A stretch of 64,000 nt of DNA from Octopus bimaculoides (lineage: Eukaryota). The stretch covers positions 51,038,348 through 51,102,347 of the forward strand of contig NC_068998.1 of assembly GCF_001194135.2 (NCBI RefSeq). Direction: 5' to 3'. A program made the translations under genes and the position numbers. The notes beneath the pieces were generated by a model. The model ran no database searches and was not told where the DNA came from. It was given only the letters and a program-made list of their open reading frames with translations. Positions 1,707-59,951 of this stretch are shown piece by piece; the first letter of the stretch is position 1; each line of letters starts with the position of its first letter.

Positions 1707-4700
1707 ATGAGATATTTTCTATACTATTATATTCTTGTTGTTCGTAAGTAGCTAAAAGATAAAGCGTTGTTCACCGTCATTAACATTCCTGTTTAATCTA
1801 ACTAAATCCCATTATTTTTCTCCATGTGTAATTATGTCTGTCTGTCTCTGTCTGTCTGTCTCTGTCTGTCTACATCGTTGCAGTATCGGCACTGCAACAC
1901 AGGAGTAGCTGTGTAGTAAGTAGCTTGCTTACCAACCACATTGTTACGGGTTCAGTCTCACTGTGTGGCACCTTGGGCAAGTGTCTTCTACTATAGCACC
2001 GGGCCGACCAAAGCTTTGTCTGTGGATTTGGTCGACAGAAACTGAAAGAAGCCCGTCGTATATATATATATATATATATATATATATATATATATATNNN
2101 NNNNNNNNNNNNNNNNNNNNNNNNNNNNNNNNNNNNNNNNNNNNNNNNNNNNNNNNNNNNNNNNNNNNNNNNNNNNNNNNNNNNNNNNNNNNNNNNNNNN
2201 NNNNNNNNNNNNNNNNNNNNNNNNNNNNNNNNNNNNNNNNNNNNNNNNNNNNNNNNNNNNNNNNNNNNNNNNNNNNNNNNNNNNNNNNNNNNNNNNNNNN
2301 NNNNNNNNNNNNNNNNNNNNNNNNNNNNNNNNNNNNNNNNNNNNNNNNNNNNNNNNNNNNNNNNNNNNNNNNNNNNNNNNNNNNNNNNNNNNNNNNNNNN
2401 NNNNNNNNNNNNNNNNNNNNNNNNNNNNNNNNNNNNNNNNNNNNNNNNNNNNNNNNNNNNNNNNNNNNNNNNNNNNNNNNNNNNNNNNNNNNNNNNNNNN
2501 NNNNNNNNNNNNNNNNNNNNNNNNNNNNNNNNNNNNNNNNNNNNNNNNNNNNNNNNNNNNNNNNNNNNNNNNNNNNNNNNNNNNNNNNNNNNNNNNNNNN
2601 NNNNNNNNNNNNNNNNNNNNNNNNNNNNNNNNNNNNNNNNNNNNNNNNNNNNNNNNNNNNNNNNNNNNNNNNNNNNNNNNNNNNNNNNNNNNNNNNNNNN
2701 NNNNNNNNNNNNNNNNNNNNNNNNNNNNNNNNNNNTATATATATATATATATATATATATATATATATATGTCTACATGCATATGTGTGTGTGTGTGTTT
2801 TTTTTTGCAGTTTAATTAGATAAAACACATTATATAATTTGCCCTATTTTATATCTTCCACAGATGGAAACTGGATTATCAATGGTCAGTATGCTCTTTC
2901 TTACCATAAACTGGATCTTGTTTGTGCAATTTATTTTACTACATATTTTATGATAGTTAGGTTTGTAGTATATTTTAATAGCTAACGATCTGTGTTTTTA
3001 CTATATTCATTGTATTTTTATTCAAATATTCAGTTCTATATCGTATAGTTAAGTTATTATTTTATATCTAGATGCTTCTTATAATGTGTACTAAATAATC
3101 ATATTGACATTGACATACACACACATTTACACACACATATAAACACACACACACACACACACTCATACAACAAACACACGCATGTATGTGTACGTGTGCC
3201 TGTGCGTTTCTCATCGTTTTTCCAGAATCCCTTATACTAATGAATAGAGCGTATCACGAAAACTGAGTCGTCGACAAGAAGGGACTTTTCTCGTGTGCCG
3301 AATCAGAAAATATCTAAAATATTTTTATAATATGTTTGCATCTAATAAATATTCATTTTTCTTTGCTGTAAATCATAGATACGGAGAACCAGGTTCAAAA
3401 AATGCGGCATCGAGGTAGGTAATATTTTCTGATTACCATAACTTATATATACCATGCATTAAACTTTTTTATATTTTATTTCACACGTTATGTCATATAC
3501 ATACATCCAGCTATCTATTAATACATACATACATACATACATACATACATACATACATACATGCACACATACATATATACATATATGTGTGTGTATATAT
3601 ATATTATATATATATATATATATCTCCGTATTCTTTCTGTTGAAGAGCGTAGCTCGAAACGTCAAAGACTTTCCGTATTCCCGAGCGTCATACTAATATA
3701 TACTTTTGTTATTTACACCACCTGTCCTCGTCTGTTGTTATTATTTGTATATTCTCCCATATATATATATATATATATATATATATATATATATATATAT
3801 ATAACCAGTGTAAAAACCGTTTGGCTCTCTTAAAATGTTCATGGACATTTCCCTTCATCATAGACAATTACATGTAATTTCCAATCGATAATGATAAAAT
3901 GATTTCTAACTAAATGTACGTTTTATTTAATGATGCATTTCATATCTTTGCAATGAGGCACAAATATTGATTAGTAGAAATTATCTGATTTGCAGACATG
4001 GAACGTCAGGCTATCGCTGCTAAATGCTCACCCAAACAGTTTTGTCCTGAAGTCATGAATTACATAAATAATAGTCTTGAAAAGGACTGTCAGTACGTAA
4101 CAATTTATTACCTATATTACTATTCTTGTTACATCAAATAATTATGCTTTATTTTAATCTTCCTAAAAATTGTTACCACCAACAGTGTATTACAAATAGG
4201 TATTTTAACTCAGTTAAAAATTGGTGTTCTCAAATTAAATTCATTCGAATATTTCAGTGATACATAAGTAAAAGGGTAAAGACCCTCTTCAGGCATGAAT
4301 GACCATAGGATTGCATCTAGAAAGTTACCCTCCGAGGCACAAGCCCGATCAAGGTTGTTTATGGAAGACTAGCCATCGTCCATGGATACCAGCCTCCCCT
4401 CTCCATGGCACCGATGTTGTCGAAGGGAAAGGCAAAGGGGCTGATACAGCTTGGCACCAGTGATATCGCAACTCATTTCTATAGCTGAGTGAACTGGTGC
4501 AACGTGAAGTAAAGTGTATTACTCAAGTAGAAAAACGAATAACAAAATCGCTCAAGATTTGATTGCAGGCAGAAAATATCGCTCAAATTAATATGGTCGA
4601 CGCTCTACACACAATGTTGTCCAGTAATAATGGAAGATTACTAAATACAAAGTTAATTTCCAACATAAACATAAATCATATCATTTAAAGAACATAAATA

Positions 4701-57201: not shown

Positions 57202-59951
57202 ATGAAATGTATTATATACTTGTGTCTTCTCACCGTAGGTAAGTAGGCAAAAGAAAAATAAAGGTTGACCATCTTTTTCCCTATCAATTTCTGAGACTCA
57301 ATGTAAATTGATCCTGACTATGTGTCTGTCTCTCTGTCTTACTATCTATCTATCTATCTAGCTATCTCTCTCAATCCCCTTCTGAATCTCTTCACCTCTG
57401 AATCCGTCTGTTTCTCGTTTACTTTTCTTTCTGTTTTCTCTGCCTTTTCTGCCCACATATATACATGTGTGTATGCGTGTGTACATAGAACGAGAGAAAT
57501 AGCAATATATAATCTCACTAAACTTTCGACATATTTTAGTTAAAAAATAAATTTAATCAATGCTTTTTACAAACATTAATGAAATATATTACTAAAAAGT
57601 TTTACTTTCGAACATGGCTTCAGCAGCAACGCGATGCCCTGTGTCCGCTTATACAGAATTGCTCAAGACGTTTATTATATTACTTCAAGAAACTTACTCA
57701 ATAAATATATAATTGTAAAACAAAAGAATACAGCCTGTCTTCTCAACACAAGCCTCTACATTGAACAGACTGGAGGCACAAAAATTATAAACTTTATATA
57801 TTTCATAATTAGGGTAATAATACAAGCAAGTTTCAGATCAGAAAACTATGAAGATACGTACAAACTATATCAGTTTCTTTAATTATTAACTGTGTAATCC
57901 TATTAAATGTTCCCACAACGTCAGTAACGCAAAATAATTGTATAACAATAATTATAAACTTTTACTGTATCTAACAAAGCAAGCTTTATACATCCTAAAT
58001 TTCCTCCCACAGAAAGGCAGTTGATATACTTATATACACATATTCATTTATTATATTCATTCAATGTTGTAAGAATTTTAAAGAACTTACCGTTTAAACT
58101 TTGTAGGTGCTGCTAAGAATATGTCTTGTAATTCCGAAGACCTATGCCCCGATGCCTGGATAAAATATCCAATAACAACGCATGATATAAACTACTGCCC
58201 GTACGTTTTTCCCTAGTTTTCGTTCTTACTATGCCTATCACGTCTATTATTTAAGTTTTAATTTATTTAATGAGTGATCATATCATCTGTATATATAATA
58301 ATTAGGTTTTTAATTACCATGGTAACGTCTAGAAATGTTCAGCTAGATTGCAGTCCATTGAAGCTAAGAAAGTCCTTATATTAGTGTACATGTTACATAG
58401 AACGAAAGAACGTTAGTATATGCAATAGGTTTGAATCCAGAAAGAAAATATATTACAAAGAACAATGTTCAGTGGACTACAGATTATGCCATTCAAAGTT
58501 AGTTTTGTCCCTTACAGGACAGCCATATTATGTTGGCAATTAAAGTTTATTTTGAATATTATGATTTTGATTAAACTTTGTATAGTATAATTATAGTTAA
58601 TATCTGAAGTATGAAAGACAAATAAGACAAAGAAATTTTCTGTCAAACTATAAAATGCAAAATAATGCAACACAGTTTTAAATAGTCTTAAATGGTACTC
58701 ATTTCATCAGACAGCAGATTTTAAACTTATAGATAATGCAGGAATGATACTTTTATTTTTCAAAACTGTTTTCTACTGATGTATGATGTTTATTTGCAGA
58801 CGAATTAAAATGTATGAAGTTTGTACGAAGAATCATCACCCAGAGTGTCTCGCTTTCTACATATATCTTTATCGCTTGTTATGTATTGGTAAGATATTTT
58901 GATTTTGTAAGATTAATATTACAAACAATATACCAAACAATATACATTTAAAAATTTACTTTAGGATTTCACTATGATGTCTATTAACATTCATTTACAA
59001 GTAGCATTTTAAATTACGGTATAAAATACGGCCATTAAAAATTATGTAGTTGCATATATTATTAGCTATTTAATATACGATGCAGCACTGAAAACATACC
59101 ATACGGTTTGGTTCTTAACATTCCCAAATTTTATCCCTCTCAATTCGAATTATTCATAAATACTCGCAGTACCAATTATATACTACGGTATTCTATGTGA
59201 ATTTGATGAACGTCTGATATTTACTTTTATCAATGAATATGACGAAAGTGTAGGAATGCAAAGTTAAATTGTGACAAGTACCGTAAATCCTCGAGTATAA
59301 TCCGCATTTTTTTTCCCAAATTTAAAAGTCAAAAATTCTTAGTGCGTACTATATACGAGGTTAAAAATGAAAAATATCTTCTAAGCAATGTCCGAGTCTC
59401 ACTTTGCTGTCCGGCAATGTTTATTCAGACGCATTTTGTGATGTCGGGCGCGAAAATACTTTAAGCTAAGCCTGAAAGCAATGAAGTCATAAAAGAATCA
59501 TCCATAACTTGCAGTAAGCAACATTTATCAAAATAAAAGTATTCAGAACACAGAGTAACATGCAACAAAAACAATTTACAAACATATTTACATTCCCATA
59601 TAACAGTTAAGAACATCACCATTATTGAATTACGCATAAGGGGTGCGTATTATACACAAGGTTTAGGTTTTTCAGAGGTACAGCCCCCTAAAAATCCCCT
59701 GCCTATTATACTCAAGGGCGGACTATACTCGAGGATTTACGGTACTTGGAACAATCCTAAGTATTTACTTGCCCCACCTTTGATTATTACCGGTTTATTA
59801 TTTGGGGATTAACAACTTCAGTCTAATTATACTGATTTCTTCGCCTATTCCAGATCCTAAACCATTAGAGAGTCGTGCTTCGCCCTGCTTTATGAGTTCC
59901 TACAACATATTACTGATACATATTTTATTGATGTTGATGTGCTGCAATTGA
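57202..59951 (+). CDS. Cluster gene 6 (subfamily B): secreted, probably GPI-anchored six-Cys protein, 105 aa
   Basis: Exons 57202-57238, 58107-58200, 58800-58888, 59854-59951, with no N-gaps inside the gene. Protein MKCIIYLCLLTVGAAKNMSCNSEDLCPDAWIKYPITTHDINYCPRIKMYEVCTKNHHPECLAFYIYLYRLLCIDPKPLESRASPCFMSSYNILLIHILLMLMCCN*. Sequon NMS. Confidence 0.88.
59281..59742. mobile_element. Tc2/pogo-like MITE in gene 6 intron 3
   Basis: TIRs CCGTAAATCCTCGAGTATA.TCCGC / GCGGA.TATACTCGAGGATTTACGG flanked by TA on both sides. Confidence 0.85.

Follow-up and report, generated by a model that had tools for sequence, protein, structure and literature searches.

A stretch of 64,000 nucleotides (nt) of chromosome CM046618.1 of Octopus bimaculoides (assembly GCA_001194135.2, near 51.04 Mb), in the following referred to as the window, carries an array of seven complete genes and exon 1 of an eighth (Table 1). 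On balance it is probable that these genes belong to an octopus-restricted, tandem-duplicated family of small, probably glycosylphosphatidylinositol (GPI)-anchored proteins, the domain of which is a distant relative of the domain at the N-terminus of repulsive guidance molecules (RGM). In each gene exon 1 encodes a short signal peptide, and two further exons encode a domain of ~57 amino acids (aa) with six invariant cysteines (Cys1 to Cys6) and three predicted helices. The last exon contributes a stalk rich in Ser, Ala and Pro, followed by small residues and, at the terminus, ~12 hydrophobic residues, resulting in a protein of about 100-140 aa. According to this reading the protein would enter the endoplasmic reticulum and form three disulfides, a GPI anchor would replace its C-terminal peptide at a small residue located ~20 residues before the end, and the anchored small helical ectodomain would sit on the outer leaflet of the membrane. 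As the domain is a likely relative of the RGM N-domain, it would probably serve as a cell-surface module for ligand binding. The ligand is not assignable from RGM, because the RGM residues contacting BMP/GDF are not conserved.

Gene structure of the array

The cysteine-coding exons were located by six-frame motif scans of the window for C-x5-CP-x13/15-C and C-x7-C-x11/12-C. The first motif is present on the plus strand at 4025, 16911, 29854, 40390, 46590 and 58127, each site being followed by the second motif 0.7-1.5 kb downstream, and a seventh pair was found on the minus strand at 53906/52334. All seven copies share AG acceptors, GTA donors and the phases 1-2 and 2-1, the first Cys exon ending two bases after the Cys3 codon and the second one base into a codon. 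The search for exon 1, defined as ATG followed by 34 bases and GT with a hydrophobic translation, returned in every gene a 37-nt exon of 12 mostly hydrophobic codons followed by GTAAGT or GTAAGC. The last exon, which was located via a block conserved in all paralogues, encodes a hydrophobic C-terminus in the seven complete genes, and joining the four core exons at canonical splice sites yields an intact open reading frame (ORF) of 102-114 aa in each of them. Including the forms with mini-exons described below, the proteins comprise 102-143 aa and contain only stalk and tail after the Cys domain. Neither the six cysteines nor the splice sites nor the phases vary among the seven genes.

Across the window the genes follow the order g0(-), g1(+), g2(+), g3(+), g4(+), g5(+), g7(-) and g6(+), i.e., two are encoded on the minus strand. 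g0 is arranged head-to-head with g1, its downstream exons lying beyond the left end of the window, and g7 is arranged tail-to-tail with g5 and head-to-head with g6. The genes g1-g4 are grouped as subfamily I and g5-g7 as subfamily II. A first-pass annotation of this DNA had described six co-oriented genes. The six plus-strand genes were found again at the same positions, with identical outer ends at 1707 and 59951, but both the count and the orientation were incomplete, g7 and g0 on the minus strand having been missed. Its exon architecture agrees with the gene models presented here: a 37-nt first coding exon of 12 hydrophobic codons, two Cys exons in phases 1-2 and 2-1, a last exon with stalk and hydrophobic tail, intact frames throughout, and exon sizes ranging from 18 nt (third exon of g2) to 125 nt (last exon of g5). 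The rest of the window contains no additional family exons, no tRNA genes were found in it, and the six selected long ORFs of the window that were scanned gave no domain support.

The window is AT-rich (33% GC), contains many microsatellites and is interrupted by 16 runs of N. All of these runs are intronic or intergenic and no coding exon touches them. The estimated gap lengths have no effect on the frame, because the flanking exons are joined by splicing. The seven-exon model of g2, the exons of which lie on both sides of all three g2 gaps, translates exactly to the annotated protein P0001.

The public g2 protein is 31 residues longer than the four-exon model, the difference being encoded by mini-exons of 39, 18 and 36 nt. 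Such mini-exons, up to three per gene in g1-g4, are all phase 1/phase 1 and are placed between exon 1 and the first Cys exon. Equivalent exons are present in g3 (39, 21 and 36 nt), in g1 (21 and 36 nt) and in g4 (a 21-nt candidate and 36 nt), and none are present in subfamily II. The mini-exons (39, 18/21 and 36 nt) code for a highly charged segment between signal peptide and Cys domain, which forms one long helix in the AlphaFold2 (AF2) model. Their presence in some public isoforms and absence from others suggests that they are cassettes subject to alternative splicing. No counterpart of the 39-nt exon of g2 and g3 was detected in g1 and g4, and in each of these two genes a gap lies at the expected site (2098-2735 in g1; 37610-38130 in g4) beside a repeat resembling a short interspersed nuclear element (SINE). 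The models of g1 and g4 are therefore possibly incomplete and each of these gaps may hide a 39-nt exon, both genes being in frame with or without it. A guessed 39-nt exon of g1 at 1924-1962 was dropped, as it falls inside the SINE-like repeat. Four copies of this repeat with 77-87% identity are present in the window (Table 1), two of which abut assembly gaps in intron 1 of g1 and g4.

Extent of the family and domain signature

A profile built from g2, g5, g6 and g7 was searched among 1.84 billion representatives and resulted in the identification of 29 protein clusters at E<1e-3, e.g., P0003 at 1e-36. All named clusters originate from O. bimaculoides, O. vulgaris or O. sinensis, which supports the earlier proposal of a lineage-specific family. 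Most named relatives are encoded on the chromosome of the window and a few on others. Two of them, P0015 and P0016, located at 49.63 and 49.87 Mb of CM046618.1 and hence 1.2-1.4 Mb from the window, share the 37-nt exon 1 and the intron phases with the window genes. The locus at 49.87 Mb carries three family genes in a row (121, 106 and 123 aa). The family is therefore distributed in several clusters over at least 1.5 Mb of the chromosome.

Some relatives are multi-domain proteins, the domain being present twice in P0028, three times in P0008, four times in P0005 and eight times in P0003. In an alignment of 42 domains the six Cys columns are invariant, with the spacings C3-x8-C4 and C4-x6..8-C5, and the family signature reads C-x5..7-C-[P]-x-A-x3-YP-x3-PD-x2-[YF]C-x-R-[LIM]-x2-[YF]-x2-C-x6..8-C-x3-[FY]-x3-[YF]-x3..5-C. 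Most of this signature is retained in g5-g7. The genes g1-g4 represent a derived branch, in which FYYEYELC is present and YP..PD is missing. As the pair of Cys exons starts and ends in phase 1, it is repeatable in frame; judged from the phases of the window genes, in-frame duplication of this pair would yield the relatives with 2-8 domains.

Probable relation to the RGM N-domain

The earlier view that the family is without known relatives has to be corrected, as the family profile reaches RGM_N, and only RGM_N, in PDB and Pfam. Judged by sequence comparison the link is weak yet reproducible. In Pfam scans of the relatives RGM_N (PF06535) was matched by P0005 with 37.9 bits, which is above the gathering cut-off of 24.2 bits, by P0022 with 22.2 bits and by P0027 with 15.2 bits. 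It is the only Pfam family to recur, with matches at E<1 in 17 of the 42 single domains (best 2e-4). A search of all PDB sequences with the family profile retrieved only the N-domains of RGMB and hemojuvelin (E 0.03-0.4), and hhalign against RGMA, RGMB and RGMC resulted in P = 4.8e-4 over the stretch from Cys3 to Cys5. As a control, each RGM sequence was shuffled in 2000 trials with the Cys positions fixed. The real score was reached in 0/2000 shuffles for RGMB, 13/2000 for RGMA and 1/2000 for RGMC, showing that the match exceeds mere Cys spacing.

The RGM N-domain is a three-helix, three-disulfide bundle that binds to BMP2 and GDF5 (PMC7354924), and RGMs are GPI-anchored (PMC8112912). The octopus domain resembles RGM_N (PDB 4UHZ, 4UI0, 6Z3M) in the order of its six cysteines, in the C-x8-C-x7-C centre, which is identical in both (RGMA/B/C: C-x4-C-x22-C-x8-C-x7-C-x20-C), and in having an aromatic residue before Cys3, Leu at +3 and Tyr/Phe at +6 after Cys3. 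Three helices are solved for RGM and predicted for the octopus family. The AF2 models of g2 and g7, which were built from full-length precursors with a 7-sequence alignment, place helices around Cys1-2, Cys3-4 and Cys5-6, and this prediction is in line with the probably helical core that had been suggested before. Furthermore, both domains belong to extracellular proteins that end in a GPI-type signal, which is putative in the octopus family. In contrast to full-length RGM, the octopus proteins lack the RGM_C/vWD-like domain and the GDPH autocleavage site, and no Pfam match to RGM_C was obtained on the window proteins or scanned relatives. Unlike in RGM, the domain occurs alone or in 2-8 tandem copies, and its shorter Cys2-Cys3 loop has its own YP...PD motif. 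Most likely, the octopus domain is distantly related to the RGM N-terminal domain and differs from it in standing alone.

Signal peptide, tail and putative GPI anchor

By inspection, the C-terminal ~12 residues are hydrophobic in g1-g4, g6, g7 and most relatives. This tail is preceded by a spacer of 7-10 residues, in front of which small residues (S, A, N, C, G) are clustered, and the feature recurs in single- and multi-domain relatives while its sequence drifts. It is well established that a GPI signal combines a site of small residues with a spacer and a hydrophobic stretch at the very end. The tail fits these rules, because it is too short for a transmembrane helix and no cytoplasmic tail follows. 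A GPI anchor on the window proteins is plausible from these features. The first-pass annotation had proposed a probable GPI anchor from this architecture; signal peptide, six-Cys core and terminal hydrophobic stretch are indeed encoded, whereas the anchor itself was overstated, being deduced from rule-of-thumb features of the sequence.

Several observations weigh against a GPI-anchored RGM relative. The tail, with ~12 residues including Pro, lies near the lower limit in length for GPI signals, in g5 it is followed by 8 polar residues, and P0003, P0013 and P0025 have no hydrophobic tail. The window proteins are below every RGM_N threshold, with no match in the Pfam scan even at E<=10, and the hhalign probability to RGM is only 32%. 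The link runs solely via the family profile and covers ~25-30 columns (Cys3 to Cys5); single-sequence PDB searches with P0028 and P0005 gave no matches. The confidence of the AF2 models is moderate (predicted local distance difference test scores of 74 and 65 for g2 and g7), and a Foldseek search of both models against PDB gave nothing significant, RGMB (6z3m_C) being on rank 6 with E 6.5 for g2 and g7 having no matches. The RG[DN] loop and the His/Leu contacts to BMP/GDF of RGM_N are missing: the RG[DN]-L-x-x-H contact motif after Cys5 is absent, with RG at +1/+2 in 0/42 domains and mostly Phe/Tyr at position +4, and helix 3 is shorter than that of RGM by 8-12 residues (contact residues of RGM as given in PMC7354924). 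BMP/GDF binding is therefore not transferable to the octopus family. Finally, no published description of the family was found in the literature on these LOC genes or on octopus with RGM or GPI.

Other families of small cysteine-rich proteins

Ly6/uPAR proteins and neuritin (CPG15) are similar to the octopus family in that they are small, contain a signal peptide and a GPI-type C-terminus and are often encoded by clustered genes. However, Ly6/uPAR proteins are beta-rich with 8-10 cysteines and a C-terminal CCxxxxCN, whereas the octopus proteins have six core cysteines, lack this motif and are predicted to be all-helical; no Pfam match to UPAR_LY6 was obtained. Neuritin (NRN1), nodulin-like and further small Cys families were dismissed in the absence of credible Pfam matches, so that the non-match to Ly6/uPAR and to known small Cys families reported before was confirmed. 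GDNF/GAS1 was suggested by the UniRef label "GDNF/GAS1 domain-containing" of the paralogue A0A0L8GPX5 (P0028). GFR-alpha and GAS1 are GPI-anchored receptors with all-alpha, disulfide-rich domains, in which they would resemble the octopus family. We take the number and spacing of their cysteines to differ from those of the octopus family. The label was not reproduced, since Pfam GDNF gave no match at E<=10 on the window proteins, P0028 and the other scanned relatives, and PDB searches at E<=10 with the family profile and with P0028 retrieved no GFR-alpha or GAS1 chains.

Sequence divergence and regulatory elements

Pairwise ratios of nonsynonymous to synonymous substitution rates (dN/dS) among the seven window genes range from 0.34 to 1.24. 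MAFFT alignments of g1-g4 show lower conservation for the first Cys exon than for the introns on either side (identity of 0.55 vs 0.65; 0.43 for random control pairs), and the other exons are only slightly more conserved than their flanks. The paralogues diverge fast, which fits a diversifying surface repertoire. Roles in recognition (gamete, self/non-self or neuronal), as suggested by the first-pass annotation, are hypothetical.

Upstream of the coding sequences of g1, g2, g3, g4 and g6 a promoter motif, CAGCTGTTACGTCAT (E-box and CRE-like), followed by a TATA-like box, is located 58-91 nt before the ATG. The motif matches 9 times in the window compared to 1.4 expected, and 5 of the 9 matches lie 58-91 nt upstream of an exon-1 ATG. 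At homologous intron positions of g2 and g4 two more copies are present in minus orientation (18066 and 41112). Downstream, the first ~50 nt past the stop codon (TGATGGAATTCAAAGTCAACTGAAAGAATATATTTGATGTGAGA...) show conservation between the two subfamilies in spite of a protein identity of only ~28%. This block may represent a regulatory element of the 3' untranslated region (UTR). The ORFs of g5 and g6 read into it because the stop codon is mutated; in g5 the ancestral TGA was changed to TGC, by which the tail gains 10 codons, 8 of them polar.

Public gene models and feature coordinates

The genes had been called hidden and the family unrecognised by the first-pass annotation. This was not borne out, as the profile search showed that versions of g1-g7 are filed under the name "uncharacterized protein" in RefSeq, UniProt or EukProt, g0 having none (Table 1). 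The window genes are unstudied rather than hidden, and the public models are inconsistent. The region can serve as a warning for annotation: with exons of 18-125 nt, the public models conflict with one another, in that starts are extended, mini-exons are skipped, Cys6 is lost in one model and another model is partial. Outside of the family, a 96-aa ORF is reminiscent in sequence of what we take to be the C-terminus of a mariner/Tc1-type transposase; no Pfam match was obtained for it.

Table 1. Coordinates of the array genes and further features of the window, with the corresponding public models.
Feature	Position	Strand	Exons or description	Public model
g0	465-429	-	exon 1 only (MKCYLCFCFLVL, donor GTAAGT); exon 1 search and blastn similarity to g4 exon-1 region	
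g1 (subfamily I)	1707-6718	+	1707-1743, 2864-2884, 3379-3414, 3996-4092 (Cys1-3), 5098-5189 (Cys4-6), 6618-6718 (stalk and tail)	P0009; upstream start (from 1659), without 39-nt exon
g2 (subfamily I), LOC106874739 (XP_014778060 / A0A0L8GU99), 137 aa	12689-19624	+	12689-12725, 14037-14075, 15068-15085, 15629-15664, 16882-16978, 18159-18250, 19530-19624	P0001; same seven-exon protein in RefSeq and UniProt
g3 (subfamily I)	23331-32231	+	23331/23340-23376, 24615-24653 (cassette), 27769-27789, 28871-28906, 29825-29921, 30688-30779, 32134-32231	P0006; 129 aa, 39-nt exon skipped; 142-aa product also called at g3 locus
g4 (subfamily I)	37099-41744	+	37099-37135, 38178-38198 (candidate), 39316-39351, 40361-40457, 41204-41295, 41653-41744	P0012; long upstream extension, exon 1 joined directly to 36-nt exon at 39316
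g5 (subfamily II)	44782-49304	+	44782-44818, 46570-46663, 48054-48142, 49180-49304	P0002; upstream start, 44734
g7 (subfamily II), LOC106874740	55884-51106	-	55884-55848, 53926-53833, 52356-52268, 51194-51106	P0004; annotated isoform, alternative donor, Cys6 lost
g6 (subfamily II)	57202-59951	+	57202-57238, 58107-58200, 58800-58888, 59854-59951; gap-free gene	P0007; partial, last two exons only
CAGCTGTTACGTCAT motif	1616-1630 (g1, 91 nt upstream of ATG), 12631-12645 (g2), 23281-23295 (g3), 37008-37022 (g4), 57116-57130 (g6)	+	promoter motif	
Conserved 3' UTR block	6719-6790, 19625-19700, 32232-32300, 41745-41811, 49266-49345, 59906-60016, 51053-51117(-)			
SINE-like repeat	1905-2088, 37429-37609, 48788-48952, 53433-53490		four copies	
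96-aa ORF	49480-49770	+		

Alternative explanations

The RGM likeness could also have arisen by convergence, i.e., the family might have an independent, octopus-born helical fold with six cysteines, in which an amphipathic helix pattern around C-x8-C-x7-C resembles RGM_N. We consider this somewhat unlikely. It would account for a match that is short and below threshold for the window genes, for the Foldseek result without significance, for the lack of detected homologues outside Octopus and for the missing functional RGM motif. However, RGM_N is the sole family that was recovered in both search directions, Cys spacing by itself does not account for the score, and P0005 passes the Pfam cut-off. 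Alternatively, the products might be soluble secreted peptides with signalling, antimicrobial or venom-like function, in which case the hydrophobic C-terminus would not be a GPI signal but a propeptide that is removed or a segment that inserts into membranes. Conservation of signal peptide and UTRs, combined with a fast-evolving, Cys-framed mature region and tandem duplication, is found here and forms the pattern of toxin and effector families; the tail-less members and the polar extension of g5 point in the same direction. This explanation is nevertheless unlikely, since tail, small residues and spacer are kept in most members despite the drift in sequence, which fits a selected processing signal, and since the only detectable relative, RGM, is GPI-anchored.

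A further explanation would be that the array consists of decaying duplicated DNA, i.e., of functionless pseudogenes or mis-predicted exons. dN/dS values often near 1, exons that are hardly more conserved than introns and the inconsistency of the public models (P0004 without Cys6, P0007 partial) could be understood in this way. Decay is extremely unlikely, however, given seven ORFs that are intact over 4-7 exons, with invariant cysteines, splice sites and phases, a common promoter motif with TATA box that was retained, and a seven-exon g2 protein that is held identically by RefSeq and UniProt. A distant relationship to the RGM N-domain and a probable GPI anchor form the interpretation we prefer.

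Implications for octopus biology

In a more far-reaching proposal, which we regard as quite improbable, octopuses would possess a private, fast-diversifying GPI repertoire with 1-8 mini RGM-type three-helix domains, encoded by dozens of clustered genes on one chromosome, whose products might act at the surface as co-receptors of secreted ligands, BMP/GDF-like or other, or as decoys for them, or else as identity tags of cells in neural or sensory tissue. The E-box and CRE-like promoter motif hints at a neuronal or muscle-type regulation. Cephalopod gene family expansions, such as those of protocadherins, C2H2 zinc fingers and G-protein-coupled receptors, are the main genomic leads to the neural and sensory novelties of these animals, and the family described here would join them as unstudied, lineage-restricted small surface proteins. 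The RGM N-terminal domain is otherwise known from a large protein that acts in guidance and as a BMP co-receptor, of which it forms one part, and to our knowledge it has not been described as a stand-alone or tandem-repeat module. If the relationship to RGM is true, the octopus family would represent the ligand-binding head of such a receptor, cut loose, lipid-anchored and multiplied.

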